From contig OZ251222.1 in NCBI GenBank assembly GCA_965240325.2, positions 2,294,001-2,358,000 of the forward strand: 64,000 nt of DNA, in the 5' to 3' direction. The translations under genes were made by a program, and so were the position numbers. Shown here one piece after another: positions 25,899-64,000 of the stretch (the first letter of the stretch is position 1; each line of letters starts with the position of its first letter). The notes beneath the pieces are model-generated. The model did not search any database. It saw nothing but the letters and a program-made list of their open reading frames with translations, and was not told the origin of the DNA. Origin of the DNA: Rebecca billardiae RCC1528 (lineage: Eukaryota > Protista > Haptophyta).

Positions 25899-26140
25899 TA
25901 ACTGTACTTTACTGCCTGTCGTCGCCTGCCTGAGCTGTTTTTTAAATTCCCCTTTATAACGGGCTCCGGGTGATCAGACTGGCGGCCGAAGCCTCCAGCC
26001 CTACCCTGGCCAGCCCCCAACCAACCACCACCCTCACCCAACCTCAAACCACTGACCGAGTGCGTCTCTTATTCTTATAATAATAATGGTAAACCGTAGA
26101 ATGAGTACAGTGTGAGCATCAGCATGGAGTCGCCCGCCTC

Positions 26141-34842: not shown

Positions 34843-35004
34843 CGTTGATGCCGCGTTCGAATTCCAAATCACCACGACGAGCGATGACGAAAAACAATAC
34901 TTATAAAAAGACGAGCCCAGGCGCACGGCTGGCTGTCGACGACACTGAAAAGCTATGTGCGCCAGTTCGGGACTCAGACTGAGTCAGAGAAAACAACTTG
35001 TATA

Positions 35005-35794
35005 GTCCCTCACAAGTTTAAGCCTCCCGACATTGTTCGCCATATCAGCGCAGCAAAGCAGCGGCGCGCCACCATACCAGGGGCGTACTTGGCCCACTCC
35101 ACTGCCGTGCACATGAGGTGCGCCCGGACCCGATTGCTCGAGTCCTCGCAAATAGGCGTGGCTGTGCATCCTGGGTTGACGTTTGGTACCCGGCGGCCGG
35201 CGAGCTCGACTGGCGGCGAGCAGACCTGCCTGCGTGCCGCCGGCTGTCGGCAGCCTCCGTGCGCTGAGCCGCGCGCCGCGCGGTGCGTGTGCGACGTAGC
35301 TCCGCCCACGCCACGCATGCACCCTCGCGCCGCGCCGCCAGCTTGGCGCTGCCGTCAGCCAGAGCCGATCGAGTGCATGCCCGAGCCTGCTCCGAGAGCA
35401 TCAATATGGGCTGCGTGTGGCTGCGCGTGCACTTTCGTCGCCTAATTTTGCCAGCGTCGAGTTGGCGCGTGGCACGCCCACCGTAGCAGCACGACTCCCG
35501 AATGCACAAAAGCCGGGGGTCAGCTGAATTAATGCAGCTCACACGACCGCGCTCCACGCCGAAAACCAGCCCGTAGCTGCCCGCCGGCTGGCTCGTGCAT
35601 GCGCACCGACTGCCGGGCGCATCGACACCGTGGCGCACAGAGCGCGGGTGCCGCGGCCGGGTGGGTATGTACTGACGCGGCTGGGCCTGGTGCATGCGCG
35701 GGCGGATGGGCTCTGCCCGGGTCGGCGCGTAGCGGGCGTGCGGGCTGAGACAAAGTCGTGCCTGCTGCAGCCGGCAACTAAATTTGTGGGTCCC
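35005..35794 (-). mobile_element. 790-bp module, array-terminal copy joined to unique host DNA through TA (35003-35004)
   Basis: Reverse complement of 24315-25104; flanked by acttgtaTA on the left and TA-agtgagcag on the right. Confidence 0.92.
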
Positions 35795-36274
35795 TAAGTG
35801 AGCAGGTAGTAGAAAAGTCGGAACGAGGGCGAGGGCGACGGCGAGCGAGGCCGGCGTCGGTCCACATGGGTCGGGGATATTCCCGCCGTGCAGCGATCCC
35901 AGCGCGTCGTCCGCCTCCGGCGAGTTGGTGGGGCACAGGAGCCCACATCTTGCGCAGAGCAGCTGAGGTTAATCGGACGCTCCCGCGCGGCGGCGGGGCC
36001 GGCAGTTGGGGCCTCCACTGGGTTGGACTTGCGCCACGCCGCTTGTCATAGCTCGACGAGCTCAACCCGTGGCGCCGAGCTCGTGCCCAGCGCACATCCG
36101 CGAGGGCGTGCGGCCCCAGCGCACGCGGCGGCTGCGTCGATGGGGCGCTCGCCATGGACGGAACGAGTTCGAATAGAGGCCACACCGCTTCGTCAGCTGT
36201 AAGATCAACTTTGGGCGGCTCGGGACGTAACGTGCACTCATCTTCGGTCGTGGCCAAGCAGCCGGCGGCGGCTG

Positions 36275-37576
36275 ATGGGCCGCGCGCCGACCGCGCCCAA
36301 AGATCGGCGCGGGCGCAAAGGCGCCCACCGCGTCGGCTACGCTCCGAACAGGCGGGTATCGCGGGAGTGTATTGCTCTGGATTACAACCCGAAGGCCCTG
36401 GGCCCTGCGGAGAGGTTTCACCATGCGATCGGCGCGTGCGTGCTGTGCCTCAATGAAGGCTCTCCGTTGGCCTCAGCTTTCCAGAGGGCGGCGCGGTCGG
36501 CCGAGGTCACCGAGAAGACGATGAAGAAGTGGTTCATGGACTGGCACACGGAGGGCTGGCACATCGATGCTGACGGGAAGCCGAAGCGCGGTCCACGCCC
36601 ACGCCTCAGTGCCAAGGCGCAGGCGGCGCTTACGTCCGAGCTCAGCGCCGGGCCGGCTGGTCAGAGTGTGCGGAAGGCTGCGTGCCGCGCCGTCGGTGCT
36701 GGATCGCTCGATGCGTCCGCGCTCGACGTCTCCGACGAGACGCTACGCCGCGCGGCGCGGAAGAAGATGGATTGGGAGCCGCTCAAGGTGAGGAAGCAGA
36801 TCACGGCTCAGCAGGCGAAGAAGCGGGTGGCGTTCGCACGGTGGCTGCAGAGAGTCAAGGCGATGGTTGACAGGCTGTTCTTCACCGACTCGAAGTACTT
36901 CAAGTTCGACGTCACGAACCGGAGCACGGTGATGTCGTGGACGCTGCGTGACGAGCCCAAGCGCAAGCTGAACCAGGTCCAGGCAGGTGACTGCGTGATC
37001 CATGGCTACGCCGGCGCCTGCTCTCGCGGCATCACGCCGCTCTATTTTGCCACGGGCACTCACGGCCGCACGCATGAGAATGGTCGCGGCAAGCAGTGCC
37101 GTGGCGTGTGCTGGAAGGAGTACCTGAACGACGTGCTGCCTTTCCTGGACAAGGAGGCCCAGGCGCTCTTCGGCAACTTCATCAGACAGATGATCTTCCA
37201 GCAGGACAGTGCCTCACCCCACACGGCGCTGGCTGTGCGCCAATGGCTCGACGAGCGGTTTGGCCCCGAGGGACACCTTGGCCCCAAGTCGACCGAGGGT
37301 CAGCCGGGCCGTAGCTGGCCGCCGAACAGCGCCGACTTGTCGCTCATTGAGCATGTCTGGGCGCGCGTGGAGCAGCTTCTCAACGCATGGAAGCACAAGT
37401 GGTGCACCGACAACCCGAGCAAGCAGCGGCCAACCTTCAAGGAGTTCGAGGAGGTGGTGAAGGCTAAGTTCGAGGAGGTACGGAACGACAAGAAGTTCAT
37501 CCAGGCGCTGTTCAAATCCTATCGGCGTCGGCTGCAGGACTGCGTCGAGACCAAGGGTGAGCAGCGCGTGCGCTGA
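36275..37576 (+). CDS. Tc1/mariner-IS630 superfamily transposase, DD47E, 433 aa
   Basis: HTH-like N-terminus with a GPRPR linker, FFTDSK (D1), FQQDSASPH (D2), WPPNSADLSLIEHVW (E), and C-terminal SYRRRLQDCVETKG as in Tc1-type enzymes. Confidence 0.93.
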   Translation: MGRAPTAPKDRRGRKGAHRVGYAPNRRVSRECIALDYNPKALGPAERFHHAIGACVLCLNEGSPLASAFQRAARSAEVTEKTMKKWFMDWHTEGWHIDADGKPKRGPRPRLSAKAQAALTSELSAGPAGQSVRKAACRAVGAGSLDASALDVSDETLRRAARKKMDWEPLKVRKQITAQQAKKRVAFARWLQRVKAMVDRLFFTDSKYFKFDVTNRSTVMSWTLRDEPKRKLNQVQAGDCVIHGYAGACSRGITPLYFATGTHGRTHENGRGKQCRGVCWKEYLNDVLPFLDKEAQALFGNFIRQMIFQQDSASPHTALAVRQWLDERFGPEGHLGPKSTEGQPGRSWPPNSADLSLIEHVWARVEQLLNAWKHKWCTDNPSKQRPTFKEFEEVVKAKFEEVRNDKKFIQALFKSYRRRLQDCVETKGEQRVR

Positions 37577-37692
37577 AGAGCAGTGTCGGACAATGATGGT
37601 ATAGTTTATTAGCTGCTCAGTATAGTAGATCTCGAGTCATATCATATCAGCCTATAGGCTATAGCTTACTCTACGTCTAACGTCACGTCTCA

Positions 37693-40600
37693 CGACAGCT
37701 GCGACCAGCGGCGGCTAGCTCAGCAGAGCGGCGCGACTGAGCGATGATGTGCGCGCCGGGCGGGCACGCCGACGCGTGAGCAGTGCGCCCCGGGGCCGCT
37801 CGACGCGCGCGCGCGCGCCCGGCCGCACGGCGCCTCCTCCACGCGGCCCCATGTCCCGGCTCAGAGCGAGCAGCTGACAGCAACTGGTCTTCACGATCTG
37901 CGGCGGCGGCGAGCAGCTACGACTGCTACGGGGGCCTCAGAGCGCGGCGAGGACGAGCTAGCTGGGCGAGATCGGGGTGCGGGGCACTCGGCGCGGCCCA
38001 GGCACACCGAGCCCACGTGCCAGCGGGGCGGCGCCGCGCCGCGCGAGCGCGCGCTCGCGCGCCGACTTTTGTCGGGTCAGATCAGCCTACGGCAGCTCAC
38101 GGCCTCAGCCGACGGCTGCGACCAGCGGCGGCTAGCTCAGCAGAGCGGCGCGACTGAGCGATGATGCGCGCGCCGGGCGGGCACGCCGACGCGTGAGCAG
38201 TGCGCCCCGGGGCCGCTCGACGCGCACGCGCGCGCCCGGCCGCACGGCGCCTCCTCCTCGCGGCCCCATGTCCCGGCTCAGAGCGAGCAGCTGACAGCAG
38301 CTGGTCTTCACGATCTGCGGCGGCGGCGAGCAGCTACGACTGCTACGGGGGCCTCAGAGCGCGGCGAGGACGAGCTAGCTGGGCGAGATCCGGGTGCGGG
38401 GTGCTCTGCGTGGCCCAGGCACACCGAGCCCACGTGCCAGCGGGGCGGCGCGGCGCCGCGCGCGCGCGCGCGCTCGCGCCGACTTTTGTCGGGTCAGATC
38501 AGCTGACGGCAGCTCACGGCCTCAGCCGACGGCTGCGACCAGCGGCGGCTAGCTCAGCAGAGCGGCGCGACTGAGCGATGATGCGCGCGCCGGGCGGGCA
38601 CGCCGACGCGTGAGCAGTGCGCCCCGGGGCCGCTCGACGCGCACGCGCGCGCCCGGCCGCACGGCGCCTCCTCCTCGCGGCCCCATGTCCCGGCTCAGAG
38701 CGAGCAGCTGACAGCAACTGGTCTTCACGATCTGCGGCGGCGGCGAGCAGCTACGACTGCTACGGGGACCTCAGAGCGCGGCGAGGACGCGCGGGCTGGG
38801 CGCGATCGGGGTGCGGGACGCTCGGCGCGGCCCAGGCGCACCGAGCCCACGTGCCAGCGAGGTGGCGCGGCGCGCCGCGCGCGCGCGCTCGCGCGCCGAC
38901 TTTTGTCGGGTCAGATCAGCTTACGGCAGCTCACGGCCTCAGCCGACGGCTGCGACCAGCGGCGGCTAGCTCAGCAGAGCGGCGCGACTGAGCGATGATG
39001 CGCGCGCCGGGCGGGCGCGCCGACACGTGAGCAGTGCGCCCGGGTGCCGCTCGACGCGCACGCGCGCGCCCGGCCGCACGGCGTCTCCTCCACGCGGCCC
39101 CATGTCCCGGCTCAGAGCGAGCAGCTGACAGCAGCTGGTCTTCACGATCTGCGGCGGCGGCGAGCAGCTACGACTGCTACGGGGGCCTCAGAGCGCGGCG
39201 AGGACGAGCTAGCTGGGCGAGATCCGGGTGCGGGGTGCTCGGCGCGGCCCAGGCGCACCGAGCCCACGTGCCAGCGAGGTGGCGCGGCGCGCCGCGCGCG
39301 CGCGCTCGCGCGCCGACTTTTGTCGGGTCAGATCAGCTTACGGCAGCTCACGGCCTCAGCCGACGGCTGCGACCAGCGGCGGCTAGCTCAGCAGAGCGGC
39401 GCGACTGAGCGATGATGCGCGCGCCGGGCGGGCACGCCGACGCGTGAGCAGTGCGCCCCGGGGCCGCTCGACGCGCACGCGCGCGCCCGGCCGCACGGCG
39501 CCTCCTCCTCGCGGCCCCATGTCCCGGCTCAGAGCGAGCAGCTGACAGCAGCTGGTCTTCACGATCTGCGGCGGCGGCGAGCAGCTACGACTGCTACGGG
39601 GGCCTCAGAGCGCGGCGAGGACGAGCTAGCTGGGCGAGATCCGGGTGCGGGGTGCTCTGCGTGGCCCAGGCACACCGAGCCCACGTGCCAGCGGGGCGGC
39701 GCGGCGCCGCGCGCGCGCGCGCGCTCGCGCCGACTTTTGTCGGGTCAGATCAGCTGACGGCAGCTCACGGCCTCAGCCGACGGCTGCGACCAGCGGCGGC
39801 TAGCTCAGCAGAGCGGCGCGACTGAGCGATGATGCGCGCGCCGGGCGGGCACGCCGACGCGTGAGCAGTGCGCCCCGGGGCCGCTCGACGCGCACGCGCG
39901 CGCCCGGCCGCACGGCGCCTCCTCCTCGCGGCCCCATGTCCCGGCTCAGAGCGAGCAGCTGACAGCAACTGGTCTTCACGATCTGCGGCGGCGGCGAGCA
40001 GCTACGACTGCTACGGGGACCTCAGAGCGCGGCGAGGACGCGCGGGCTGGGCGCGATCGGGGTGCGGGACGCTCGGCGCGGCCCAGGCGCACCGAGCCCA
40101 CGTGCCAGCGAGGTGGCGCGGCGCGCCGCGCGCGCGCGCTCGCGCGCCGACTTTTGTCGGGTCAGATCAGCTTACGGCAGCTCACGGCCTCAGCCGACGG
40201 CTGCGACCAGCGGCGGCTAGCTCAGCAGAGCGGCGCGACTGAGCGATGATGCGCGCGCCGGGCGGGCGCGCCGACACGTGAGCAGTGCGCCCGGGTGCCG
40301 CTCGACGCGCACGCGCGCGCCCGGCCGCACGGCGTCTCCTCCACGCGGCCCCATGTCCCGGCTCAGAGCGAGCAGCTGACAGCAGCTGGTCTTCACGATC
40401 TGCGGCGGCGGCGAGCAGCTACGACTGCTACGGGGGCCTCAGAGCGCGGCGAGGACGAGCTAGCTGGGCGAGATCCGGGTGCGGGGTGCTCGGCGCGGCC
40501 CAGGCGCACCGAGCCCACGTGCCAGCGAGGTGGCGCGGCGCGCCGCGCGCGCGCGCTCGCGCGCCGACTTTTGTCGGGTCAGATCAGCTTACGGCAGCTC

Positions 40601-42405
40601 ACGGCCTCAGCCGACGGCTGCGACCAGCGGCGGCTAGCTCAGCAGAGCGGCGCGACTGAGCGATGATGCGCGCGCCGGGCGGGCACGCCGACGCGTGAGC
40701 AGTGCGCCCCGGGGCCGCTCGACGCGCACGCGCGCGCCCGGCCGCACGGCGCCTCCTCCTCGCGGCCCCATGTCCCGGCTCAGAGCGAGCAGCTGACAGC
40801 AGCTGGTCTTCACGATCTGCGGCGGCGGCGAGCAGCTACGACTGCTACGGGGGCCTCAGAGCGCGGCGAGGACGAGCTAGCTGGGCGAGATCCGGGTGCG
40901 GGGTGCTCTGCGTGGCCCAGGCACACCGAGCCCACGTGCCAGCGGGGCGGCGCGGCGCCGCGCGCGCGCGCGCGCTCGCGCCGACTTTTGTCGGGTCAGA
41001 TCAGCTGACGGCAGCTCACGGCCTCAGCCGACGGCTGCGACCAGCGGCGGCTAGCTCAGCAGAGCGGCGCGACTGAGCGATGATGCGCGCGCCGGGCGGG
41101 CACGCCGACGCGTGAGCAGTGCGCCCCGGGGCCGCTCGACGCGCACGCGCGCGCCCGGCCGCACGGCGCCTCCTCCTCGCGGCCCCATGTCCCGGCTCAG
41201 AGCGAGCAGCTGACAGCAGCTGGTCTTCACGATCTGCGGCGGCGGCGAGCAGCTACGACTGCTACGGGGGCCTCAGAGCGCGGCGAGGACGAGCTAGCTG
41301 GGCGAGATCCGGGTGCGGGGTGCTCTGCGTGGCCCAGGCACACCGAGCCCACGTGCCAGCGGGGCGGCGCGGCGCCGCGCGCGCGCGCGCGCGCTCGCGC
41401 CGACTTTTGTCGGGTCAGATCAGCTGACGGCAGCTCACGGCCTCAGCCGACGGCTGCGACCAGCGGCGGCTAGCTCAGCAGAGCGGCGCGACTGAGCGAT
41501 GATGCGCGCGCCGGGCGGGCACGCCGACGCGTGAGCAGTGCGCCCCGGGGCCGCTCGACGCGCACGCGCGCGCCCGGCCGCACGGCGCCTCCTCCTCGCG
41601 GCCCCATGTCCCGGCTCAGAGCGAGCAGCTGACAGCAACTGGTCTTCACGATCTGCGGCGGCGGCGAGCAGCTACGACTGCTACGGGGACCTCAGAGCGC
41701 GGCGAGGACGCGCGGGCTGGGCGCGATCGGGGTGCGGGACGCTCGGCGCGGCCCAGGCGCACCGAGCCCACGTGCCAGCGAGGTGGCGCGGCGCGCCGCG
41801 CGCGCGCGCTCGCGCGCCGACTTTTGTCGGGTCAGATCAGCTTACGGCAGCTCACGGCCTCAGCCGACGGCTGCGACCAGCGGCGGCTAGCTCAGCAGAG
41901 CGGCGCGACTGAGCGATGATGCGCGCGCCGGGCGGGCGCGCCGACACGTGAGCAGTGCGCCCGGGTGCCGCTCGACGCGCACGCGCGCGCCCGGCCGCAC
42001 GGCGTCTCCTCCACGCGGCCCCATGTCCCGGCTCAGAGCGAGCAGCTGACAGCAGCTGGTCTTCACGATCTGCGGCGGCGGCGAGCAGCTACGACTGCTA
42101 CGGGGGCCTCAGAGCGCGGCGAGGACGAGCTAGCTGGGCGAGATCCGGGTGCGGGGTGCTCGGCGCGGCCCAGGCGCACCGAGCCCACGTGCCAGCGAGG
42201 TGGCGCGGCGCGCCGCGCGCGCGCGCTCGCGCGCCGACTTTTGTCGGGTCAGATCAGCTTACGGCAGCTCACGGCCTCAGCCGACGGCTGCGACCAGCGG
42301 CGGCTAGCTCAGCAGAGCGGCGCGACTGAGCGATGATGCGCGCGCCGGGCGGGCACGCCGACGCGTGAGCAGTGCGCCCCGGGGCCGCTCGACGCGCACG
42401 CGCGC
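37693..42405 (+). repeat. 417-bp tandem satellite, about 11.3 monomers up to the gap
   Basis: Shadow ORFs recur every 417 bp (37783, 38200, 38617, ...); one monomer has a 2-bp insertion. Confidence 0.97.
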
Positions 42406-42605
42406 NNNNNNNNNNNNNNNNNNNNNNNNNNNNNNNNNNNNNNNNNNNNNNNNNNNNNNNNNNNNNNNNNNNNNNNNNNNNNNNNNNNNNNNNNNNNNNN
42501 NNNNNNNNNNNNNNNNNNNNNNNNNNNNNNNNNNNNNNNNNNNNNNNNNNNNNNNNNNNNNNNNNNNNNNNNNNNNNNNNNNNNNNNNNNNNNNNNNNNN
42601 NNNNN
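42406..42605. other. Assembly gap, 200 N
   Basis: Run of 200 n; satellite orientation flips across it. Confidence 0.99.
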
Positions 42606-43972
42606 GCGCGTCGAGCGGCACCCGGGCGCACTGCTCACGTGTCGGCGCGCCCGCCCGGCGCGCGCATCATCGCTCAGTCGCGCCGCTCTGCTGAGCTAGC
42701 CGCCGCTGGTCGCAGCCGTCGGCTGAGGCCGTGAGCTGCCGTAAGCTGATCTGACCCGACAAAAGTCGGCGCGCGAGCGCGCGCGCGCGGCGCGCCGCGC
42801 CACCTCGCTGGCACGTGGGCTCGGTGCGCCTGGGCCGCGCCGAGCGTCCCGCACCCCGATCGCGCCCAGCCCGCGCGTCCTCGCCGCGCTCTGAGGTCCC
42901 CGTAGCAGTCGTAGCTGCTCGCCGCCGCCGCAGATCGTGAAGACCAGTTGCTGTCAGCTGCTCGCTCTGAGCCGGGACATGGGGCCGCGAGGAGGAGGCG
43001 CCGTGCGGCCGGGCGCGCGCGTGCGCGTCGAGCGGCCCCGGGGCGCACTGCTCACGCGTCGGCGTGCCCGCCCGGCGCGCGCATCATCGCTCAGTCGCGC
43101 CGCTCTGCTGAGCTAGCCGCCGCTGGTCGCAGCCGTCGGCTGAGGCCGTGAGCTGCCGTCAGCTGATCTGACCCGACAAAAGTCGGCGCGAGCGCGCGCG
43201 CGCGCGCGGCGCCGCGCCGCCCCGCTGGCACGTGGGCTCGGTGTGCCTGGGCCACGCAGAGCACCCCGCACCCGGATCTCGCCCAGCTAGCTCGTCCTCG
43301 CCGCGCTCTGAGGCCCCCGTAGCAGTCGTAGCTGCTCGCCGCCGCCGCAGATCGTGAAGACCAGCTGCTGTCAGCTGCTCGCTCTGAGCCGGGACATGGG
43401 GCCGCGAGGAGGAGGCGCCGTGCGGCCGGGCGCGCGCGTGCGCGTCGAGCGGCCCCGGGGCGCACTGCTCACGCGTCGGCGTGCCCGCCCGGCGCGCGCA
43501 TCATCGCTCAGTCGCGCCGCTCTGCTGAGCTAGCCGCCGCTGGTCGCAGCCGTCGGCTGAGGCCGTGAGCTGCCGTAGGCTGATCTGACCCGACAAAAGT
43601 CGGCGCGCGAGCGCGCGCTCGCGCGGCGCGGCGCCGCCCCGCTGGCACGTGGGCTCGGTGTGCCTGGGCCGCGCCGAGTGCCCCGCACCCCGATCTCGCC
43701 CAGCTAGCTCGTCCTCGCCGCGCTCTGAGGCCCCCGTAGCAGTCGTAGCTGCTCGCCGCCGCCGCAGATCGTGAAGACCAGTTGCTGTCAGCTGCTCGCT
43801 CTGAGCCGGGACATGGGGCCGCGTGGAGGAGGCGCCGTGCGGCCGGGCGCGCGCGCGCGCGTCGAGCGGCCCCGGGGCGCACTGCTCACGCGTCGGCGTG
43901 CCCGCCCGGCGCGCACATCATCGCTCAGTCGCGCCGCTCTGCTGAGCTAGCCGCCGCTGGTCGCAGCTGTCG
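42606..43972 (-). repeat. 417-bp tandem satellite, about 3.3 monomers from the gap
   Basis: Reverse complement of the first monomers of 37693 onward. Confidence 0.95.
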
Positions 43973-44088
43973 TGAGACGTGACGTTAGACGTAGAGTAAG
44001 CTATAGCCTATAGGCTGATATGATATGACTCGAGATCTACTATACTGAGCAGCTAATAAACTATACCATCATTGTCCGACACTGCTCT

Positions 44089-45390
44089 TCAGCGCACGCG
44101 CTGCTCACCCTTGGTCTCGACGCAGTCCTGCAGCCGACGCCGATAGGATTTGAACAGCGCCTGGATGAACTTCTTGTCGTTCCGTACCTCCTCGAACTTA
44201 GCCTTCACCACCTCCTCGAACTCCTTGAAGGTTGGCCGCTGCTTGCTCGGGTTGTCGGTGCACCACTTGTGCTTCCATGCGTTGAGAAGCTGCTCCACGC
44301 GCGCCCAGACATGCTCAATGAGCGACAAGTCGGCGCTGTTCGGCGGCCAGCTACGGCCCGGCTGACCCTCGGTCGACTTGGGGCCAAGGTGTCCCTCGGG
44401 GCCAAACCGCTCGTCGAGCCATTGGCGCACAGCCAGCGCCGTGTGGGGTGAGGCACTGTCCTGCTGGAAGATCATCTGTCTGATGAAGTTGCCGAAGAGC
44501 GCCTGGGCCTCCTTGTCCAGGAAAGGCAGCACGTCGTTCAGGTACTCCTTCCAGCACACGCCACGGCACTGCTTGCCGCGACCATTCTCATGCGTGCGGC
44601 CGTGAGTGCCCGTGGCAAAATAGAGCGGCGTGATGCCGCGAGAGCAGGCGCCGGCGTAGCCATGGATCACGCAGTCACCTGCCTGGACCTGGTTCAGCTT
44701 GCGCTTGGGCTCGTCACGCAGCGTCCACGACATCACCGTGCTCCGGTTCGTGACGTCGAACTTGAAGTACTTCGAGTCGGTGAAGAACAGCCTGTCAACC
44801 ATCGCCTTGACTCTCTGCAGCCACCGTGCGAACGCCACCCGCTTCTTCGCCTGCTGAGCCGTGATCTGCTTCCTCACCTTGAGCGGCTCCCAATCCATCT
44901 TCTTCCGCGCCGCGCGGCGTAGCGTCTCGTCGGAGACGTCGAGCGCGGACGCATCGAGCGATCCAGCACCGACGGCGCGGCACGCAGCCTTCCGCACACT
45001 CTGACCAGCCGGCCCGGCGCTGAGCTCGGACGTAAGCGCCGCCTGCGCCTTGGCACTGAGGCGTGGGCGTGGACCGCGCTTCGGCTTCCCGTCAGCATCG
45101 ATGTGCCAGCCCTCCGTGTGCCAGTCCATGAACCACTTCTTCATCGTCTTCTCGGTGACCTCGGCCGACCGCGCCGCCCTCTGGAAAGCTGAGGCCAACG
45201 GAGAGCCTTCATTGAGGCACAGCACGCACGCGCCGATCGCATGGTGAAACCTCTCCGCAGGGCCCAGGGCCTTCGGGTTGTAATCCAGAGCAATACACTC
45301 CCGCGATACCCGCCTGTTCGGAGCGTAGCCGACGCGGTGGGCGCCTTTGCGCCCGCGCCGATCTTTGGGCGCGGTCGGCGCGCGGCCCAT
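44089..45390 (-). CDS. DD47E transposase, copy 2
   Basis: Translation identical to 36275-37576. Confidence 0.93.
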   Translation of the reverse strand: MGRAPTAPKDRRGRKGAHRVGYAPNRRVSRECIALDYNPKALGPAERFHHAIGACVLCLNEGSPLASAFQRAARSAEVTEKTMKKWFMDWHTEGWHIDADGKPKRGPRPRLSAKAQAALTSELSAGPAGQSVRKAACRAVGAGSLDASALDVSDETLRRAARKKMDWEPLKVRKQITAQQAKKRVAFARWLQRVKAMVDRLFFTDSKYFKFDVTNRSTVMSWTLRDEPKRKLNQVQAGDCVIHGYAGACSRGITPLYFATGTHGRTHENGRGKQCRGVCWKEYLNDVLPFLDKEAQALFGNFIRQMIFQQDSASPHTALAVRQWLDERFGPEGHLGPKSTEGQPGRSWPPNSADLSLIEHVWARVEQLLNAWKHKWCTDNPSKQRPTFKEFEEVVKAKFEEVRNDKKFIQALFKSYRRRLQDCVETKGEQRVR

Positions 45391-46660: not shown

Positions 46661-46662
46661 TA

Positions 46663-52516: not shown

Positions 52517-52632
52517 TGAGACGTGACGTTAGACGTAGAGTAAGCTATAGCCTATAGGCTGATATGATATGACTCGAGATCTACTATACTGAGCAGCTAA
52601 TAAACTATACCATCATTGTCCGACACTGCTCT

Positions 52633-53934
52633 TCAGCGCACGCGCTGCTCACCCTTGGTCTCGACGCAGTCCTGCAGCCGACGCCGATAGGATTTGAACA
52701 GCGCCTGGATGAACTTCTTGTCGTTCCGTACCTCCTCGAACTTAGCCTTCACCACCTCCTCGAACTCCTTGAAGGTTGGCCGCTGCTTGCTCGGGTTGTC
52801 GGTGCACCACTTGTGCTTCCATGCGTTGAGAAGCTGCTCCACGCGCGCCCAGACATGCTCAATGAGCGACAAGTCGGCGCTGTTCGGCGGCCAGCTACGG
52901 CCCGGCTGACCCTCGGTCGACTTGGGGCCAAGGTGTCCCTCGGGGCCAAACCGCTCGTCGAGCCATTGGCGCACAGCCAGCGCCGTGTGGGGTGAGGCAC
53001 TGTCCTGCTGGAAGATCATCTGTCTGATGAAGTTGCCGAAGAGCGCCTGGGCCTCCTTGTCCAGGAAAGGCAGCACGTCGTTCAGGTACTCCTTCCAGCA
53101 CACGCCACGGCACTGCTTGCCGCGACCATTCTCATGCGTGCGGCCGTGAGTGCCCGTGGCAAAATAGAGCGGCGTGATGCCGCGAGAGCAGGCGCCGGCG
53201 TAGCCATGGATCACGCAGTCACCTGCCTGGACCTGGTTCAGCTTGCGCTTGGGCTCGTCACGCAGCGTCCACGACATCACCGTGCTCCGGTTCGTGACGT
53301 CGAACTTGAAGTACTTCGAGTCGGTGAAGAACAGCCTGTCAACCATCGCCTTGACTCTCTGCAGCCACCGTGCGAACGCCACCCGCTTCTTCGCCTGCTG
53401 AGCCGTGATCTGCTTCCTCACCTTGAGCGGCTCCCAATCCATCTTCTTCCGCGCCGCGCGGCGTAGCGTCTCGTCGGAGACGTCGAGCGCGGACGCATCG
53501 AGCGATCCAGCACCGACGGCGCGGCACGCAGCCTTCCGCACACTCTGACCAGCCGGCCCGGCGCTGAGCTCGGACGTAAGCGCCGCCTGCGCCTTGGCAC
53601 TGAGGCGTGGGCGTGGACCGCGCTTCGGCTTCCCGTCAGCATCGATGTGCCAGCCCTCCGTGTGCCAGTCCATGAACCACTTCTTCATCGTCTTCTCGGT
53701 GACCTCGGCCGACCGCGCCGCCCTCTGGAAAGCTGAGGCCAACGGAGAGCCTTCATTGAGGCACAGCACGCACGCGCCGATCGCATGGTGAAACCTCTCC
53801 GCAGGGCCCAGGGCCTTCGGGTTGTAATCCAGAGCAATACACTCCCGCGATACCCGCCTGTTCGGAGCGTAGCCGACGCGGTGGGCGCCTTTGCGCCCGC
53901 GCCGATCTTTGGGCGCGGTCGGCGCGCGGCCCAT
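52633..53934 (-). CDS. DD47E transposase, copy 3
   Basis: Translation identical to the other copies. Confidence 0.93.
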   Translation of the reverse strand: MGRAPTAPKDRRGRKGAHRVGYAPNRRVSRECIALDYNPKALGPAERFHHAIGACVLCLNEGSPLASAFQRAARSAEVTEKTMKKWFMDWHTEGWHIDADGKPKRGPRPRLSAKAQAALTSELSAGPAGQSVRKAACRAVGAGSLDASALDVSDETLRRAARKKMDWEPLKVRKQITAQQAKKRVAFARWLQRVKAMVDRLFFTDSKYFKFDVTNRSTVMSWTLRDEPKRKLNQVQAGDCVIHGYAGACSRGITPLYFATGTHGRTHENGRGKQCRGVCWKEYLNDVLPFLDKEAQALFGNFIRQMIFQQDSASPHTALAVRQWLDERFGPEGHLGPKSTEGQPGRSWPPNSADLSLIEHVWARVEQLLNAWKHKWCTDNPSKQRPTFKEFEEVVKAKFEEVRNDKKFIQALFKSYRRRLQDCVETKGEQRVR

Positions 53935-54414
53935 CAGCCGCCGCCGGCTGCTTGGCCACGACCGAAGATGAGTGCACGTTACGTCCCGAGCCGCCCAAAG
54001 TTGATCTTACAGCTGACGAAGCGGTGTGGCCTCTATTCGAACTCGTTCCGTCCGTGGCGAGCGCCCCATCGACGCAGCCGCCGCGTGCGCTGGGGCCGCA
54101 CGCCCTCGCGGATGTGCGCTGGGCACGAGCTCGGCGCCACGGGTTGAGCTCGTCGAGCTATGACAAGCGGCGTGGCGCAAGTCCAACCCAGTGGAGGCCC
54201 CAACTGCCGGCCCCGCCGCCGCGCGGGAGCGTCCGATTAACCTCAGCTGCTCTGCGCAAGATGTGGGCTCCTGTGCCCCACCAACTCGCCGGAGGCGGAC
54301 GACGCGCTGGGATCGCTGCACGGCGGGAATATCCCCGACCCATGTGGACCGACGCCGGCCTCGCTCGCCGTCGCCCTCGCCCTCGTTCCGACTTTTCTAC
54401 TACCTGCTCACTTA

Positions 54415-55204
54415 GGGACCCACAAATTTAGTTGCCGGCTGCAGCAGGCACGACTTTGTCTCAGCCCGCACGCCCGCTACGCGCCGACCCGGGCAGAGCC
54501 CATCCGCCCGCGCATGCACCAGGCCCAGCCGCGTCAGTACATACCCACCCGGCCGCGGCACCCGCGCTCTGTGCGCCACGGTGTCGATGCGCCCGGCAGT
54601 CGGTGCGCATGCACGAGCCAGCCGGCGGGCAGCTACGGGCTGGTTTTCGGCGTGGAGCGCGGTCGTGTGAGCTGCATTAATTCAGCTGACCCCCGGCTTT
54701 TGTGCATTCGGGAGTCGTGCTGCTACGGTGGGCGTGCCACGCGCCAACTCGACGCTGGCAAAATTAGGCGACGAAAGTGCACGCGCAGCCACACGCAGCC
54801 CATATTGATGCTCTCGGAGCAGGCTCGGGCATGCACTCGATCGGCTCTGGCTGACGGCAGCGCCAAGCTGGCGGCGCGGCGCGAGGGTGCATGCGTGGCG
54901 TGGGCGGAGCTACGTCGCACACGCACCGCGCGGCGCGCGGCTCAGCGCACGGAGGCTGCCGACAGCCGGCGGCACGCAGGCAGGTCTGCTCGCCGCCAGT
55001 CGAGCTCGCCGGCCGCCGGGTACCAAACGTCAACCCAGGATGCACAGCCACGCCTATTTGCGAGGACTCGAGCAATCGGGTCCGGGCGCACCTCATGTGC
55101 ACGGCAGTGGAGTGGGCCAAGTACGCCCCTGGTATGGTGGCGCGCCGCTGCTTTGCTGCGCTGATATGGCGAACAATGTCGGGAGGCTTAAACTTGTGAG
55201 GGAC
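54415..55204 (+). mobile_element. 790-bp module
   Basis: Same sequence and TA junctions as 45871-46660. Confidence 0.92.
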
Positions 55205-55206
55205 TA

Positions 55207-58200
55207 AGTGAGCAGCCTCGGCTGAGGCCGTGAGCTGCCGTAGGCTGATCTGACCCGACAAAAGTCGGCGCGCGAGCGCGCGCGCGCGCGGCGCGGCGCC
55301 GCCCCGCTGGCACGTGGGCTCGGTGTGCCTGGGCCGCGCCGAGTGCCCCGCACCCGGATCTCGCCCAGCTAGCTCGTCCTCGCCGCGCTCTGAGGCCCCC
55401 GTAGCAGTCGTAGCTGCTCGCCGCCGCCGCAGATCGTGAAGACCAGCTGCTGTCAGCTGCTCGCTCTGAGCCGGGACATGGGGCCGCGTGGAGGAGGCGC
55501 CGTGCGGCCGGGCGCGCGCGTGCGCGTCGAGCGGCCCCTGGGCGCACTGCTCACGCGTCGGCGCGCCCGCCCGGCGCGCGCATCATCGCTCAGTCGCGCC
55601 GCTCTGCTGAGCTAGCCGCCGCTGGTCGCAGCCGTCGGCTGAGGCCGTGAGCTGCCGTAGGCTGATCTGACCCGACAAAAGTCGGCGCGCGAGCGCGCGC
55701 GCGCGCGGCGCGGCGCCGCCCCGCTGGCACGTGGGCTCGGTGTGCCTGGGCCGCGCCGAGTGCCCCGCACCCCGATCTCGCCCAGCTAGCTCGTCCTCGC
55801 CGCGCTCTGAGGCCCCCGTAGCAGTCGTAGCTGCTCGCCGCCGCCGCAGATCGTGAAGACCAGCTGCTGTCAGCTGCTCGCTCTGAGCCGGGACATGGGG
55901 CCGCGAGGAGGAGGCGCCGTGCGGCCGGGCGCGCGCGTGCGCGTCGAGCGGCCCCGGGGCGCACTGCTCACGTGTCGGCGTGCCCGCCCGGCGCGCGCAT
56001 CATCGCTCAGTCGCGCCGCTCTGCTGAGCTAGCCGCCGCTGGTCGCAGCCGTCGGCTGAGGCCGTGAGCTGCCGTCAGCTGATCTGACCCGACAAAAGTC
56101 GGCGCGAGCGCGCGCGCGCGCGCGGCGCCGCGCCGCCCCGCTGGCACGTGGGCTCGGTGTGCCTGGGCCACGCAGAGCACCCCGCACCCGGATCTCGCCC
56201 AGCTAGCTCGTCCTCGCCGCGCTCTGAGGCCCCCGTAGCAGTCGTAGCTGCTCGCCGCCGCCGCAGATCGTGAAGACCAGCTGCTGTCAGCTGCTCGCTC
56301 TGAGCCGGGACATGGGGCCGCGAGGAGGAGGCGCCGTGCGGCCGGGCGCGCGCGTGCGCGTCGAGCGGCCCCGGGGCGCACTGCTCACGCGTCGGCGTGC
56401 CCGCCCGGCGCGCGCATCATCGCTCAGTCGCGCCGCTCTGCTGAGCTAGCCGCCGCTGGTCGCAGCCGTCGGCTGAGGCCGTGAGCTGCCGTAAGCTGAT
56501 CTGACCCGACAAAAGTCGGCGCGCGAGCGCGCGCGCGCGGCGCGCCGCGCCACCTCGCTGGCACGTGGGCTCGGTGCGCCTGGGCCGCGCCGAGCACCCC
56601 GCACCCGGATCTCGCCCAGCTAGCTCGTCCTCGCCGCGCTCTGAGGCCCCCGTAGCAGTCGTAGCTGCTCGCCGCCGCCGCAGATCGTGAAGACCAGCTG
56701 CTGTCAGCTGCTCGCTCTGAGCCGGGACATGGGGCCGCGTGGAGGAGACGCCGTGCGGCCGGGCGCGCGCGTGCGCGTCGAGCGGCACCCGGGCGCACTG
56801 CTCACGTGTCGGCGCGCCCGCCCGGCGCGCGCATCATCGCTCAGTCGCGCCGCTCTGCTGAGCTAGCCGCCGCTGGTCGCAGCCGTCGGCTGAGGCCGTG
56901 AGCTGCCGTAAGCTGATCTGACCCGACAAAAGTCGGCGCGCGAGCGCGCGCGCGCGGCGCGCCGCGCCACCTCGCTGGCACGTGGGCTCGGTGCGCCTGG
57001 GCCGCGCCGAGCGTCCCGCACCCCGATCGCGCCCAGCCCGCGCGTCCTCGCCGCGCTCTGAGGTCCCCGTAGCAGTCGTAGCTGCTCGCCGCCGCCGCAG
57101 ATCGTGAAGACCAGTTGCTGTCAGCTGCTCGCTCTGAGCCGGGACATGGGGCCGCGAGGAGGAGGCGCCGTGCGGCCGGGCGCGCGCGTGCGCGTCGAGC
57201 GGCCCCGGGGCGCACTGCTCACGCGTCGGCGTGCCCGCCCGGCGCGCGCATCATCGCTCAGTCGCGCCGCTCTGCTGAGCTAGCCGCCGCTGGTCGCAGC
57301 CGTCGGCTGAGGCCGTGAGCTGCCGTCAGCTGATCTGACCCGACAAAAGTCGGCGCGAGCGCGCGCGCGCGCGCGGCGCCGCGCCGCCCCGCTGGCACGT
57401 GGGCTCGGTGTGCCTGGGCCACGCAGAGCACCCCGCACCCGGATCTCGCCCAGCTAGCTCGTCCTCGCCGCGCTCTGAGGCCCCCGTAGCAGTCGTAGCT
57501 GCTCGCCGCCGCCGCAGATCGTGAAGACCAGCTGCTGTCAGCTGCTCGCTCTGAGCCGGGACATGGGGCCGCGAGGAGGAGGCGCCGTGCGGCCGGGCGC
57601 GCGCGTGCGCGTCGAGCGGCCCCGGGGCGCACTGCTCACGCGTCGGCGTGCCCGCCCGGCGCGCGCATCATCGCTCAGTCGCGCCGCTCTGCTGAGCTAG
57701 CCGCCGCTGGTCGCAGCCGTCGGCTGAGGCCGTGAGCTGCCGTCAGCTGATCTGACCCGACAAAAGTCGGCGCGAGCGCGCGCGCGCGCGCGGCGCCGCG
57801 CCGCCCCGCTGGCACGTGGGCTCGGTGTGCCTGGGCCACGCAGAGCACCCCGCACCCGGATCTCGCCCAGCTAGCTCGTCCTCGCCGCGCTCTGAGGCCC
57901 CCGTAGCAGTCGTAGCTGCTCGCCGCCGCCGCAGATCGTGAAGACCAGCTGCTGTCAGCTGCTCGCTCTGAGCCGGGACATGGGGCCGCGAGGAGGAGGC
58001 GCCGTGCGGCCGGGCGCGCGCGTGCGCGTCGAGCGGCCCCGGGGCGCACTGCTCACGCGTCGGCGTGCCCGCCCGGCGCGCGCATCATCGCTCAGTCGCG
58101 CCGCTCTGCTGAGCTAGCCGCCGCTGGTCGCAGCCGTCGGCTGAGGCCGTGAGCTGCCGTCAGCTGATCTGACCCGACAAAAGTCGGCGCGAGCGCGCGC

Positions 58201-61200
58201 GCGCGCGCGGCGCCGCGCCGCCCCGCTGGCACGTGGGCTCGGTGTGCCTGGGCCACGCAGAGCACCCCGCACCCGGATCTCGCCCAGCTAGCTCGTCCTC
58301 GCCGCGCTCTGAGGCCCCCGTAGCAGTCGTAGCTGCTCGCCGCCGCCGCAGATCGTGAAGACCAGCTGCTGTCAGCTGCTCGCTCTGAGCCGGGACATGG
58401 GGCCGCGAGGAGGAGGCGCCGTGCGGCCGGGCGCGCGCGTGCGCGTCGAGCGGCCCCGGGGCGCACTGCTCACGCGTCGGCGTGCCCGCCCGGCGCGCGC
58501 ATCATCGCTCAGTCGCGCCGCTCTGCTGAGCTAGCCGCCGCTGGTCGCAGCCGTCGGCTGAGGCCGTGAGCTGCCGTCAGCTGATCTGACCCGACAAAAG
58601 TCGGCGCGAGCGCGCGCGCGCGCGCGGCGCCGCGCCGCCCCGCTGGCACGTGGGCTCGGTGTGCCTGGGCCACGCAGAGCACCCCGCACCCGGATCTCGC
58701 CCAGCTAGCTCGTCCTCGCCGCGCTCTGAGGCCCCCGTAGCAGTCGTAGCTGCTCGCCGCCGCCGCAGATCGTGAAGACCAGCTGCTGTCAGCTGCTCGC
58801 TCTGAGCCGGGACATGGGGCCGCGAGGAGGAGGCGCCGTGCGGCCGGGCGCGCGCGTGCGCGTCGAGCGGCCCCGGGGCGCACTGCTCACGCGTCGGCGT
58901 GCCCGCCCGGCGCGCGCATCATCGCTCAGTCGCGCCGCTCTGCTGAGCTAGCCGCCGCTGGTCGCAGCCGTCGGCTGAGGCCGTGAGCTGCCGTCAGCTG
59001 ATCTGACCCGACAAAAGTCGGCGCGAGCGCGCGCGCGCGCGCGGCGCCGCGCCGCCCCGCTGGCACGTGGGCTCGGTGTGCCTGGGCCACGCAGAGCACC
59101 CCGCACCCGGATCTCGCCCAGCTAGCTCGTCCTCGCCGCGCTCTGAGGCCCCCGTAGCAGTCGTAGCTGCTCGCCGCCGCCGCAGATCGTGAAGACCAGC
59201 TGCTGTCAGCTGCTCGCTCTGAGCCGGGACATGGGGCCGCGAGGAGGAGGCGCCGTGCGGCCGGGCGCGCGCGTGCGCGTCGAGCGGCCCCGGGGCGCAC
59301 TGCTCACGCGTCGGCGTGCCCGCCCGGCGCGCGCATCATCGCTCAGTCGCGCCGCTCTGCTGAGCTAGCCGCCGCTGGTCGCAGCCGTCGGCTGAGGCCG
59401 TGAGCTGCCGTCAGCTGATCTGACCCGACAAAAGTCGGCGCGAGCGCGCGCGCGCGCGCGGCGCCGCGCCGCCCCGCTGGCACGTGGGCTCGGTGTGCCT
59501 GGGCCACGCAGAGCACCCCGCACCCGGATCTCGCCCAGCTAGCTCGTCCTCGCCGCGCTCTGAGGCCCCCGTAGCAGTCGTAGCTGCTCGCCGCCGCCGC
59601 AGATCGTGAAGACCAGCTGCTGTCAGCTGCTCGCTCTGAGCCGGGACATGGGGCCGCGAGGAGGAGGCGCCGTGCGGCCGGGCGCGCGCGTGCGCGTCGA
59701 GCGGCCCCGGGGCGCACTGCTCACGCGTCGGCGTGCCCGCCCGGCGCGCGCATCATCGCTCAGTCGCGCCGCTCTGCTGAGCTAGCCGCCGCTGGTCGCA
59801 GCCGTCGGCTGAGGCCGTGAGCTGCCGTAAGCTGATCTGACCCGACAAAAGTCGGCGCGCGAGCGCGCGCGCGCGGCGCGCCGCGCCACCTCGCTGGCAC
59901 GTGGGCTCGGTGCGCCTGGGCCGCGCCGAGCACCCCGCACCCGGATCTCGCCCAGCTAGCTCGTCCTCGCCGCGCTCTGAGGCCCCCGTAGCAGTCGTAG
60001 CTGCTCGCCGCCGCCGCAGATCGTGAAGACCAGCTGCTGTCAGCTGCTCGCTCTGAGCCGGGACATGGGGCCGCGTGGAGGAGACGCCGTGCGGCCGGGC
60101 GCGCGCGTGCGCGTCGAGCGGCACCCGGGCGCACTGCTCACGTGTCGGCGCGCCCGCCCGGCGCGCGCATCATCGCTCAGTCGCGCCGCTCTGCTGAGCT
60201 AGCCGCCGCTGGTCGCAGCCGTCGGCTGAGGCCGTGAGCTGCCGTAAGCTGATCTGACCCGACAAAAGTCGGCGCGCGAGCGCGCGCGCGCGGCGCGCCG
60301 CGCCACCTCGCTGGCACGTGGGCTCGGTGCGCCTGGGCCGCGCCGAGCGTCCCGCACCCCGATCGCGCCCAGCCCGCGCGTCCTCGCCGCGCTCTGAGGT
60401 CCCCGTAGCAGTCGTAGCTGCTCGCCGCCGCCGCAGATCGTGAAGACCAGTTGCTGTCAGCTGCTCGCTCTGAGCCGGGACATGGGGCCGCGAGGAGGAG
60501 GCGCCGTGCGGCCGGGCGCGCGCGTGCGCGTCGAGCGGCCCCGGGGCGCACTGCTCACGCGTCGGCGTGCCCGCCCGGCGCGCGCATCATCGCTCAGTCG
60601 CGCCGCTCTGCTGAGCTAGCCGCCGCTGGTCGCAGCCGTCGGCTGAGGCCGTGAGCTGCCGTCAGCTGATCTGACCCGACAAAAGTCGGCGCGAGCGCGC
60701 GCGCGCGCGCGGCGCCGCGCCGCCCCGCTGGCACGTGGGCTCGGTGTGCCTGGGCCACGCAGAGCACCCCGCACCCGGATCTCGCCCAGCTAGCTCGTCC
60801 TCGCCGCGCTCTGAGGCCCCCGTAGCAGTCGTAGCTGCTCGCCGCCGCCGCAGATCGTGAAGACCAGCTGCTGTCAGCTGCTCGCTCTGAGCCGGGACAT
60901 GGGGCCGCGAGGAGGAGGCGCCGTGCGGCCGGGCGCGCGCGTGCGCGTCGAGCGGCCCCGGGGCGCACTGCTCACGCGTCGGCGTGCCCGCCCGGCGCGC
61001 GCATCATCGCTCAGTCGCGCCGCTCTGCTGAGCTAGCCGCCGCTGATCGCAGCCGTCGGCTGAGGCCGTGAGCTGCCGTAGGCTGATCTGACCCGACAAA
61101 AGTCGGCGCGCGAGCGCGCGCTCGCGCGGCGCGGCGCCGCCCCGCTGGCACGTGGGCTCGGTGTGCCTGGGCCGCGCCGAGTGCCCCGCACCCCGATCTC

Positions 61201-61475
61201 GCCCAGCTAGCTCGTCCTCGCCGCGCTCTGAGGCCCCCGTAGCAGTCGTAGCTGCTCGCCGCCGCCGCAGATCGTGAAGACCAGTTGCTGTCAGCTGCTC
61301 GCTCTGAGCCGGGACATGGGGCCGCGTGGAGGAGGCGCCGTGCGGCCGGGCGCGCGCGCGCGCGTCGAGCGGCCCCGGGGCGCACTGCTCACGCGTCGGC
61401 GTGCCCGCCCGGCGCGCACATCATCGCTCAGTCGCGCCGCTCTGCTGAGCTAGCCGCCGCTGGTCGCAGCTGTCG
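55207..61475 (-). repeat. 417-bp tandem satellite, 15 monomers
   Basis: About 6269 bp / 417 = 15.0. Confidence 0.95.
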
Positions 61476-61591
61476 TGAGACGTGACGTTAGACGTAGAGT
61501 AAGCTATAGCCTATAGGCTGATATGATATGACTCGAGATCTACTATACTGAGCAGCTAATAAACTATACCATCATTGTCCGACACTGCTCT

Positions 61592-62893
61592 TCAGCGCAC
61601 GCGCTGCTCACCCTTGGTCTCGACGCAGTCCTGCAGCCGACGCCGATAGGATTTGAACAGCGCCTGGATGAACTTCTTGTCGTTCCGTACCTCCTCGAAC
61701 TTAGCCTTCACCACCTCCTCGAACTCCTTGAAGGTTGGCCGCTGCTTGCTCGGGTTGTCGGTGCACCACTTGTGCTTCCATGCGTTGAGAAGCTGCTCCA
61801 CGCGCGCCCAGACATGCTCAATGAGCGACAAGTCGGCGCTGTTCGGCGGCCAGCTACGGCCCGGCTGACCCTCGGTCGACTTGGGGCCAAGGTGTCCCTC
61901 GGGGCCAAACCGCTCGTCGAGCCATTGGCGCACAGCCAGCGCCGTGTGGGGTGAGGCACTGTCCTGCTGGAAGATCATCTGTCTGATGAAGTTGCCGAAG
62001 AGCGCCTGGGCCTCCTTGTCCAGGAAAGGCAGCACGTCGTTCAGGTACTCCTTCCAGCACACGCCACGGCACTGCTTGCCGCGACCATTCTCATGCGTGC
62101 GGCCGTGAGTGCCCGTGGCAAAATAGAGCGGCGTGATGCCGCGAGAGCAGGCGCCGGCGTAGCCATGGATCACGCAGTCACCTGCCTGGACCTGGTTCAG
62201 CTTGCGCTTGGGCTCGTCACGCAGCGTCCACGACATCACCGTGCTCCGGTTCGTGACGTCGAACTTGAAGTACTTCGAGTCGGTGAAGAACAGCCTGTCA
62301 ACCATCGCCTTGACTCTCTGCAGCCACCGTGCGAACGCCACCCGCTTCTTCGCCTGCTGAGCCGTGATCTGCTTCCTCACCTTGAGCGGCTCCCAATCCA
62401 TCTTCTTCCGCGCCGCGCGGCGTAGCGTCTCGTCGGAGACGTCGAGCGCGGACGCATCGAGCGATCCAGCACCGACGGCGCGGCACGCAGCCTTCCGCAC
62501 ACTCTGACCAGCCGGCCCGGCGCTGAGCTCGGACGTAAGCGCCGCCTGCGCCTTGGCACTGAGGCGTGGGCGTGGACCGCGCTTCGGCTTCCCGTCAGCA
62601 TCGATGTGCCAGCCCTCCGTGTGCCAGTCCATGAACCACTTCTTCATCGTCTTCTCGGTGACCTCGGCCGACCGCGCCGCCCTCTGGAAAGCTGAGGCCA
62701 ACGGAGAGCCTTCATTGAGGCACAGCACGCACGCGCCGATCGCATGGTGAAACCTCTCCGCAGGGCCCAGGGCCTTCGGGTTGTAATCCAGAGCAATACA
62801 CTCCCGCGATACCCGCCTGTTCGGAGCGTAGCCGACGCGGTGGGCGCCTTTGCGCCCGCGCCGATCTTTGGGCGCGGTCGGCGCGCGGCCCAT
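61592..62893 (-). CDS. DD47E transposase, copy 4
   Basis: Translation identical to the other copies. Confidence 0.93.
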   Translation of the reverse strand: MGRAPTAPKDRRGRKGAHRVGYAPNRRVSRECIALDYNPKALGPAERFHHAIGACVLCLNEGSPLASAFQRAARSAEVTEKTMKKWFMDWHTEGWHIDADGKPKRGPRPRLSAKAQAALTSELSAGPAGQSVRKAACRAVGAGSLDASALDVSDETLRRAARKKMDWEPLKVRKQITAQQAKKRVAFARWLQRVKAMVDRLFFTDSKYFKFDVTNRSTVMSWTLRDEPKRKLNQVQAGDCVIHGYAGACSRGITPLYFATGTHGRTHENGRGKQCRGVCWKEYLNDVLPFLDKEAQALFGNFIRQMIFQQDSASPHTALAVRQWLDERFGPEGHLGPKSTEGQPGRSWPPNSADLSLIEHVWARVEQLLNAWKHKWCTDNPSKQRPTFKEFEEVVKAKFEEVRNDKKFIQALFKSYRRRLQDCVETKGEQRVR

Positions 62894-63373
62894 CAGCCGC
62901 CGCCGGCTGCTTGGCCACGACCGAAGATGAGTGCACGTTACGTCCCGAGCCGCCCAAAGTTGATCTTACAGCTGACGAAGCGGTGTGGCCTCTATTCGAA
63001 CTCGTTCCGTCCATGGCGAGCGCCCCATCGACGCAGCCGCCGCGTGCGCTGGGGCCGCACGCCCTCGCGGATGTGCGCTGGGCACGAGCTCGGCGCCACG
63101 GGTTGAGCTCGTCGAGCTATGACAAGCGGCGTGGCGCAAGTCCAACCCAGTGGAGGCCCCAACTGCCGGCCCCGCCGCCGCGCGGGAGCGTCCGATTAAC
63201 CTCAGCTGCTCTGCGCAAGATGTGGGCTCCTGTGCCCCACCAACTCGCCGGAGGCGGACGACGCGCTGGGATCGCTGCACGGCGGGAATATCCCCGACCC
63301 ATGTGGACCGACGCCGGCCTCGCTCGCCGTCGCCCTCGCCCTCGTTCCGACTTTTCTACTACCTGCTCACTTA

Positions 63374-64000
63374 GGGACCCACAAATTTAGTTGCCGGCTG
63401 CAGCAGGCACGACTTTGTCTCAGCCCGCACGCCCGCTACGCGCCGACCCGGGCAGAGCCCATCCGCCCGCGCATGCACCAGGCCCAGCCGCGTCAGTACA
63501 TACCCACCCGGCCGCGGCACCCGCGCTCTGTGCGCCACGGTGTCGATGCGCCCGGCAGTCGGTGCGCATGCACGAGCCAGCCGGCGGGCAGCTACGGGCT
63601 GGTTTTCGGCGTGGAGCGCGGTCGTGTGAGCTGCATTAATTCAGCTGACCCCCGGCTTTTGTGCATTCGGGAGTCGTGCTGCTACGGTGGGCGTGCCACG
63701 CGCCAACTCGACGCTGGCAAAATTAGGCGACGAAAGTGCACGCGCAGCCACACGCAGCCCATATTGATGCTCTCGGAGCAGGCTCGGGCATGCACTCGAT
63801 CGGCTCTGGCTGACGGCAGCGCCAAGCTGGCGGCGCGGCGCGAGGGTGCATGCGTGGCGTGGGCGGAGCTACGTCGCACACGCACCGCGCGGCGCGCGGC
63901 TCAGCGCACGGAGGCTGCCGACAGCCGGCGGCACGCAGGCAGGTCTGCTCGCCGCCAGTCGAGCTCGCCGGCCGCCGGGTACCAAACGTCAACCCAGGAT
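63374..64000 (+). mobile_element. 790-bp module, truncated by the window end
   Basis: Begins ctgctcact-TA-gggacccacaaatttag. Confidence 0.9.

Follow-up and report, generated by a model that had tools for sequence, protein, structure and literature searches.

The published description of KolobokP calls it ‘unlike any other DNA transposons’ for its long terminal direct repeats (LTDRs), and it occurs as LTDR-INT-LTDR monomers, as solo LTDRs and as multimers of the types (LTDR-INT)n-LTDR and LTDR-(INT)n-LTDR (Kojima & Bao 2022, Mob DNA 13:24, PMC9587614). Partial likenesses are found in the pseudo-compound transposons of the IS26/IS6 family, in which a segment lies between directly oriented short elements with inverted ends and alternating arrays are formed (PMC7986276 and others), and in the head-to-tail arrays of the Drosophila elements P, hobo and Bari1, whose members are separated by one target-duplication length and which expand by unequal exchange (McGurk & Barbash 2018, PMC5932611). 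Canonical Tc1/mariner elements (Tc1, Tc3, Sleeping Beauty, Mos1) have a single intronless open reading frame (ORF) of 340-440 amino acids and one inverted-repeat pair, duplicate TA and lack long direct repeats. The subject of this report is a 64,000-nucleotide stretch of the genome of the haptophyte alga Rebecca billardiae RCC1528, called the window (C1:2294001-2358000 in a 72-Mb assembly of 41 contigs with ~65% G+C). It contains an element built of two modules, a non-coding module U and a longer internal module I with a predicted transposase gene. This element most probably represents a young family of IS630/Tc1/mariner DNA transposons with a composite-like structure, in which I lies between two identical direct U repeats. 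On the evidence of sequence, the long-direct-repeat layout so far described only for KolobokP is now found in the Tc1/mariner superfamily of an alga.

The module map of the window was drawn from self-comparison and direct reading of the junctions, both of which bore out the alternation of two modules with single-TA joints proposed in an earlier note on this DNA. U has a 790-bp core with imperfect inverted ends of its own (TAG..CACAA.TTTA, about 13/19 bases), and all its copies in the window are 100% identical; its chance ORFs gave no Pfam match, and the module is devoid of recognisable coding capacity. Module I also proved to be as first described, with a perfect 9-bp inverted repeat at its ends, AGTGAGCAG, a 417-bp satellite whose start is in phase with the left end of the module, and one intact transposase ORF. 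The ORF, an open frame of 433 codons on the minus strand, lies in a unique part of 1,896 bp, and inspection of the ORFs in this 1.9-kb part revealed no second gene. Two copies of I in the window are complete. The first (46663..54412, plus strand, 7,750 bp, with its 9-bp inverted ends) comprises 14 satellite monomers (46663-52516) and the unique part (52517-54412), including the 433-amino-acid transposase gene at 52633..53934 on the minus strand; the second (55207..63371, plus strand, 8,165 bp) comprises 15 monomers and an ORF at about 61592-62893, also on the minus strand. They alternate with plus-strand copies of U, two of which, at 45869..46662 (core 45871-46660) and 54413..55206 (core 54415-55204), are complete with their flanking TA, while the third, at 63372..64000 (core from 63374), is cut by the window end and continues to C1:2358165. 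Every U/I, I/U and U/U joint in the window is a single TA.

The same arrangement is dispersed through the genome. Further pairs of U in the same orientation, 4.8-17 kb apart, lie on nine contigs: on C39, C35, C30, C10, C7, C3, C33 and C17, and at two more sites on C1. These ten further insertions have the form host-TATA-U-TA-(I)n-TA-U-TATA-host, with the same order and orientation of modules and each with different unique host flanks. Module number varies: for example, the insertion on C7 reads U-(I)4-U with a 3,999-bp spacing, that on C30 reads U-(I)3-U and that on C3 reads (U-I)2-U, and the I-TA-I joints are exact. The unique part of I is present in 23 copies in the genome, window included, all of them between U pairs. 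A pattern search gave 21 left ends of I, 15 of which follow U-TA and six I-TA, and of the 23 right ends 17 precede TA-U and six TA-I; host DNA adjoins none of the 21 and none of the 23. It is the whole U-(I)n-U block that is present as a unit at new places, and it meets host DNA with U ends only. Both the claim that host junctions are made by U ends and never by I ends, and the reading of the element as a U-I-U composite transposon, which had been put forward from the window, are supported at the scale of the genome. Many solo copies of I, with U-I joints at a single locus, had been named in the earlier note as the pattern that would speak against them; no solo I was found. The public sequencing runs, which yield low-depth contigs only and among which no RNA run was found, provide an independent check: they contain the joint I-TA-U and one more joint of the type U-TATA-host, but nothing in them spans the U-TA-U dimer of the window or shows an empty allele at a joint. 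U itself occurs alone on C13, C8 and C10, along with several U fragments. On C35 (669270-671769), one copy of U is split by an insertion of ~1.7 kb and its halves share 7 bases, as would be expected if a different element had inserted there and duplicated a 7-bp target.

A second family of the same genome displays the same layout. The best relative of the window transposase, P0002, is 37% identical to it and is encoded once, at C11:82699-84012 (the public contigs for P0002 measure 1.5 kb). Its locus reads host-TATA-U′-TA-AGTG..., followed by the gene and then, downstream, by a 415-bp satellite. U′ is 809 bp long, has good 20-bp inverted ends and is alignable to U at its two ends only. Across the genome, copies of U′ form same-orientation pairs as well as arrays, the largest with seven copies at a 3,923-bp spacing, and most of its units are too short to hold a transposase gene. 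Because the layout is the same in a family with a 37%-identical transposase, it is a property of the lineage: judged by comparison of the two families, the U/I arrangement, including the position of the satellite downstream of the gene, is a trait that was inherited and kept rather than a product of chance nesting.

Assignment of the 433-amino-acid protein comes from its relatives. For the protein itself, Pfam gave DDE_3 below the cut-off (E=0.013), and a word-based protein search matched only the protein itself. Exhaustive searching with phmmer recovered 401 relatives at E<=1e-3, most of which carry HTH_Tnp_Tc3_2, HTH_32 and DDE_3, the last being found in 36/40 aligned relatives. The profile of these relatives matches the catalytic domain of Sleeping Beauty (SB100X) with E=7e-38, as well as Mos1 (7.5e-17), SETMAR and the DNA-binding domain of Tc3. 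Residues D205, D311 and E359 are conserved and define a DD47E spacing, unlike the DD34E or DD34D of canonical Tc1/mariner enzymes. The relatives, the profile match and the conserved D/D/E residues support the Tc1-type transposase of the earlier note, and the protein belongs to the IS630/Tc1/mariner superfamily of transposases. Relatives in metagenomes are distant, lie on short contigs and mostly have ordinary inverted ends. In the closest of them (33% identity), the transposase gene is followed downstream by a ~382-bp tandem repeat, at contig positions 2253-2832, and another metagenomic contig has an exact 111-bp terminal overlap, which suggests a circle or a head-to-tail tandem.

The joints with host DNA differ from those between modules, the outer ones being TATA and the inner ones TA. 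TATA was read directly on both sides of 12 insertions (the 10 composites, the solo U of C13 and a U-TA-U dimer in the window), and it adjoins 10 of the 11 listed right ends of U. At the solo U of C8, TATA is present on the left and, by eye, on the right, after the 2-bp insertion of this copy. The sole listed right end without TATA next to it, at C22:731932-731954 (minus strand), reads TA-TCAC-TATAG, perhaps as a footprint or through rearrangement. The meaning of the double TA is revealed by an empty site. The dimer of the window occupies 24313..25898 (plus strand) and consists of a TA, a U core (24315-25104), a middle TA common to both U, a second core (25107-25896) and a last TA, the two cores being 100% identical to all other U copies of the window. 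On its left and right lie the two copies of the duplicated target TA, at 24311..24312 and 25899..25900, and the filled site reads TA-TA-U-TA-U-TA-TA. An inverted copy of the flank exists without the dimer, and there the left and right flank matches overlap by exactly 2 bases; an exact pattern search located this empty site, GTACTTTG-TA-ACTGTACTTTACTGCCTG, at C1:2399210-2399237. No second empty site was found in a flank search of the local data. Because just one TA stands at the empty site, insertion targets plain TA and duplicates it, and the extra TA of TATA belongs to the element, which corrects the earlier view of ‘TATA sites’ as the host target. The mobile DNA begins and ends with its own TA (TAG...CTA), and adjoining modules overlap in one TA.

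Variation within the family is slight. Copies of U across the genome are identical except for three single-nucleotide polymorphisms (SNPs) and one 2-bp insertion, and all 23 transposase ORFs are open and 99-100% identical. Two subtypes of I are distinguished by 9 substitutions and 2 indels in 1,896 bp, with three amino-acid changes, and intermediates between them occur on C3 and C17; the 790-bp U is identical across the subtypes. Among the three SNPs, C647T is found in both U repeats of the C33 element, G2T in both repeats of the C17 element and also in the solo U of C13, and the third in one repeat only. This degree of identity points to a family that is young, and the transposon is probably active.

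In the composite-like transposon proposed here, U would play the part of the LTDRs of KolobokP, as a non-coding module with its own inverted ends that resembles a miniature inverted-repeat transposable element (MITE). The transposase encoded by I would act on the outermost U ends, so that the block moves by the reaction usual for Tc1/mariner elements. Solo copies of U would result from recombination between two U or from U moving alone, (U-I)n-U arrays such as that of the window from unequal crossing-over between U copies, and I-TA-I and U-TA-U from exact loss of the intervening module or from joining via the self-complementary TA. The 417-bp satellite would have grown from the left end of I. 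As to the joints, Tc3 transposition is known to involve a cut in the non-transferred strand two bases in from the end. If the alga's enzyme cut in a Tc3-like manner, the 3′ overhangs of an excised molecule would be TA and self-complementary; when such overhangs paired to form circles or concatemers, each joint would be a single TA, and a cut on either side of the joint TA would restore both termini. The TA of inner joints and the TATA of outer joints would then follow from one rule.

Several observations weigh against this proposal. Neither transposition itself nor an excision product or a transcript was seen. A private SNP in both U repeats of one element, seen twice, is not predicted by simple cut-and-paste. 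The empty site is a single case and comes from an inverted flank copy that has diverged to 95% identity, and the shape of the array in the window may stem in part from scaffolding at an assembly gap. The 433-amino-acid protein has no significant helix-turn-helix match of its own in Pfam. Lastly, the TA-AGTG ends of I look alike by eye in both families, a likeness that is not needed by a model in which only U ends are used.

The alternative that fares best is an IS26-like replicative cycle, although it is considered unlikely. Recombination between two U would free a circle of U and I; only the 3′ ends of U would be nicked and joined to a target TA, the second strand remaining uncut, and host replication would copy U, yielding a host-U-I-U-host cointegrate and leaving a solo U at the donor. 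The direct repeats would be remade, and made identical, at each move. Such a cycle fits the private SNPs present in both U of an element in two of three cases (C647T on C33, G2T on C17), but this concordance amounts to two cases and is also possible if the inner unit of a multimer formed by unequal crossing-over moves. It fits the identity of U in both I subtypes despite the substitutions and indels between them, but with about 4 differences expected this uniformity is possibly due to chance. In its favour are also the ends of I, which never meet host DNA, the existence of solo U copies with the same flanks, and an architecture that has outlasted the divergence of the transposases. IS26 forms cointegrates with directly oriented copies (PMC7986276 and others), and by analogy with its translocatable units a circle of one repeat and the segment is plausible as an intermediate. 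There, however, the flanking element encodes the transposase, whereas here the repeat is non-coding, the gene lies inside and cointegrate chemistry is only proposed. The same route is considered for KolobokP by Kojima & Bao (PMC9587614). Against the cycle, no circle of U and I was seen in this genome. Moreover, cut-and-paste with cleavage of both strands is the known mode of those Tc1/mariner enzymes that have been studied. If the cycle did operate, the repeat would stand in the same relation to the donor circle as the target duplication to the target, and the shared private SNPs, the lack of I-host joints, the contrast of inner TA with outer TATA and the persistence of the layout would all be explained; a cointegrate would then be made by a eukaryotic Tc1/mariner enzyme.

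It is very improbable that U and I are separate TA-inserting elements that repeatedly land at each other's TA, the composite being rebuilt locally each time. One copy of the target duplication between head-to-tail elements is the mark of such double insertion in Drosophila P elements (PMC5932611), and all inner joints here consist of one TA. Yet the element brings in a terminal TA of its own, and another insertion next to a resident copy would therefore leave TA-TA and cannot make the single-TA inner joints. The idea of two elements targeting the TA at each other's ends, which the earlier note had offered beside the composite, fails on this point and does not explain the layout of the second family with its 37%-identical transposase; it also conflicts with ten dispersed loci of the same order and orientation and with the lack of any solo I in the junction census. 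The Drosophila tandem arrays, for their part, are local, one-off and made of one element, whereas a two-module order is here dispersed, inherited and present in two families. A non-autonomous long terminal repeat (LTR) retroelement of the LARD or TRIM kind, or else a local tandem duplication or assembly artefact, has a negligible chance of being correct: direct repeats, solo repeats and repeat-sharing arrays do recall LTR elements, and the window array does have a gap and an inverted arrangement, but U ends in TAG...CTA and not TG...CA, the duplication is 2 bp and not 4-6 bp, neither a primer-binding site nor a polypurine tract is seen by eye next to U, I has a DDE transposase as its sole gene and no reverse transcriptase, and the unit is present at 10 other loci and in independent contigs.

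The left part of the array in the window is inverted. Its host junction has the target TA at 35001..35002, the same junction being found inverted at C1:2390505, and is followed by an inverted U with two terminal TA (35003..35796, minus strand, core 35005-35794) and by an inverted partial I, cut by the gap (35797..42405, minus strand), with its unique part at 35797-37692, its transposase ORF at 36275-37576 on the plus strand and its satellite at 37693-42405. The assembly gap of N (42406..42605) separates two satellite arrays of opposite orientation, and to its right lies another partial I (42606..45868, plus strand), with satellite at 42606-43972, unique part at 43973-45868 and ORF at 44089-45390 on the minus strand. 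The satellite and the rest of I are thus inverted left of the gap and forward right of it, and self-comparison shows that 35003-39059 is the exact reverse complement of 42606-46662. The module order first written for the array holds once the modules left of the gap are flipped, but not as read along the sequence. The array extends past the window to C1:2390505, where its last U adjoins an inverted copy of the host flank left of 35003. The two flank copies (window 1-35002; C1:2390506-2400241) share 1497/1500 bases next to U (99.8%) and are 95-96% identical farther out, with different insertions, and the second copy is without the U-TA-U dimer. The gap is the turning point of an inverted duplication, which may be a real palindrome or may consist of two haplotypes of the same locus that scaffolding has joined. 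Given the opposite satellite orientation and the inverted host flank, continuity across the gap is not shown; the genome-wide results and the mechanism are independent of it.

Other repeats of the window lie outside the array. A repeat of ~122-140 bp at 25922-26060, with >40 genome copies at 97-100% identity, is probably a MITE, and the interval 29113-33300 contains two repeat families of ~2 kb, both present in dozens of copies that are 94-99% identical. An element of ~950 bp at 22782-23730 has inverted ends of roughly 40 bp (AATCACGCCTTAACC...), and the composite insertion on C3 adjoins an end of the same family. A subterminal motif, CGACTTT, was noted by eye in 3/4 U and I ends and is not used as support. 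A scan for sigma-70 promoters found none, the model being bacterial and not applicable to a eukaryote.

The architecture, which the earlier note had not recognised from described families, is one already described for KolobokP (PMC9587614). Both systems have an internal DDE transposase between long terminal direct repeats with short inverted ends of their own, solo repeats flanked by target duplications, (LTDR-INT)n-LTDR multimers, and LTDR-(INT)n-LTDR forms with one copy of a short flanking motif at the INT-INT joint. They differ in the transposase (Kolobok there, IS630/Tc1/mariner here), in the duplication (TTAA or 3-5 bp as opposed to TA), in the ends (5′-RR..YY-3′ as opposed to TAG...CTA), in the length of the repeats (about 450 or 660 bp as opposed to 790-809 bp) and in their hosts, animals there and an alga here. 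KolobokP has a His-Me finger nuclease gene, which is lacking here, whereas the internal module of the alga holds a 415-417-bp satellite in both families and all joints are exact single TA. Compared with canonical Tc1/mariner elements, the superfamily, the TA duplication and the single intronless ORF are common ground, but the unit here is bounded by direct 790-bp repeats, and inverted symmetry is confined to the interior of single modules, at the ends of each U and of I. No report of long terminal direct repeats in Tc1/mariner elements was found in the open-access literature, the part that was covered.

All the forms of KolobokP (monomer, solo repeat, multimers that share repeats, and INT-INT joints without a repeat) are therefore seen in a different superfamily and a different eukaryotic kingdom. 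As the forms of KolobokP recur in an unrelated superfamily, the layout would have arisen at least twice, or a general route to it would be open to DDE transposons. The family is clean for study, with about 23 intact near-identical genes, identical repeats, exact TA joints and an empty site, and the sister family beside it has one autonomous member and many that lack the protein. The question left by the KolobokP paper, by what means the composite structure persists, becomes testable here with a small enzyme of a well-understood type. Finally, the element carries and spreads a 415-417-bp satellite, and it would provide a case of satellite seeding by a transposon.

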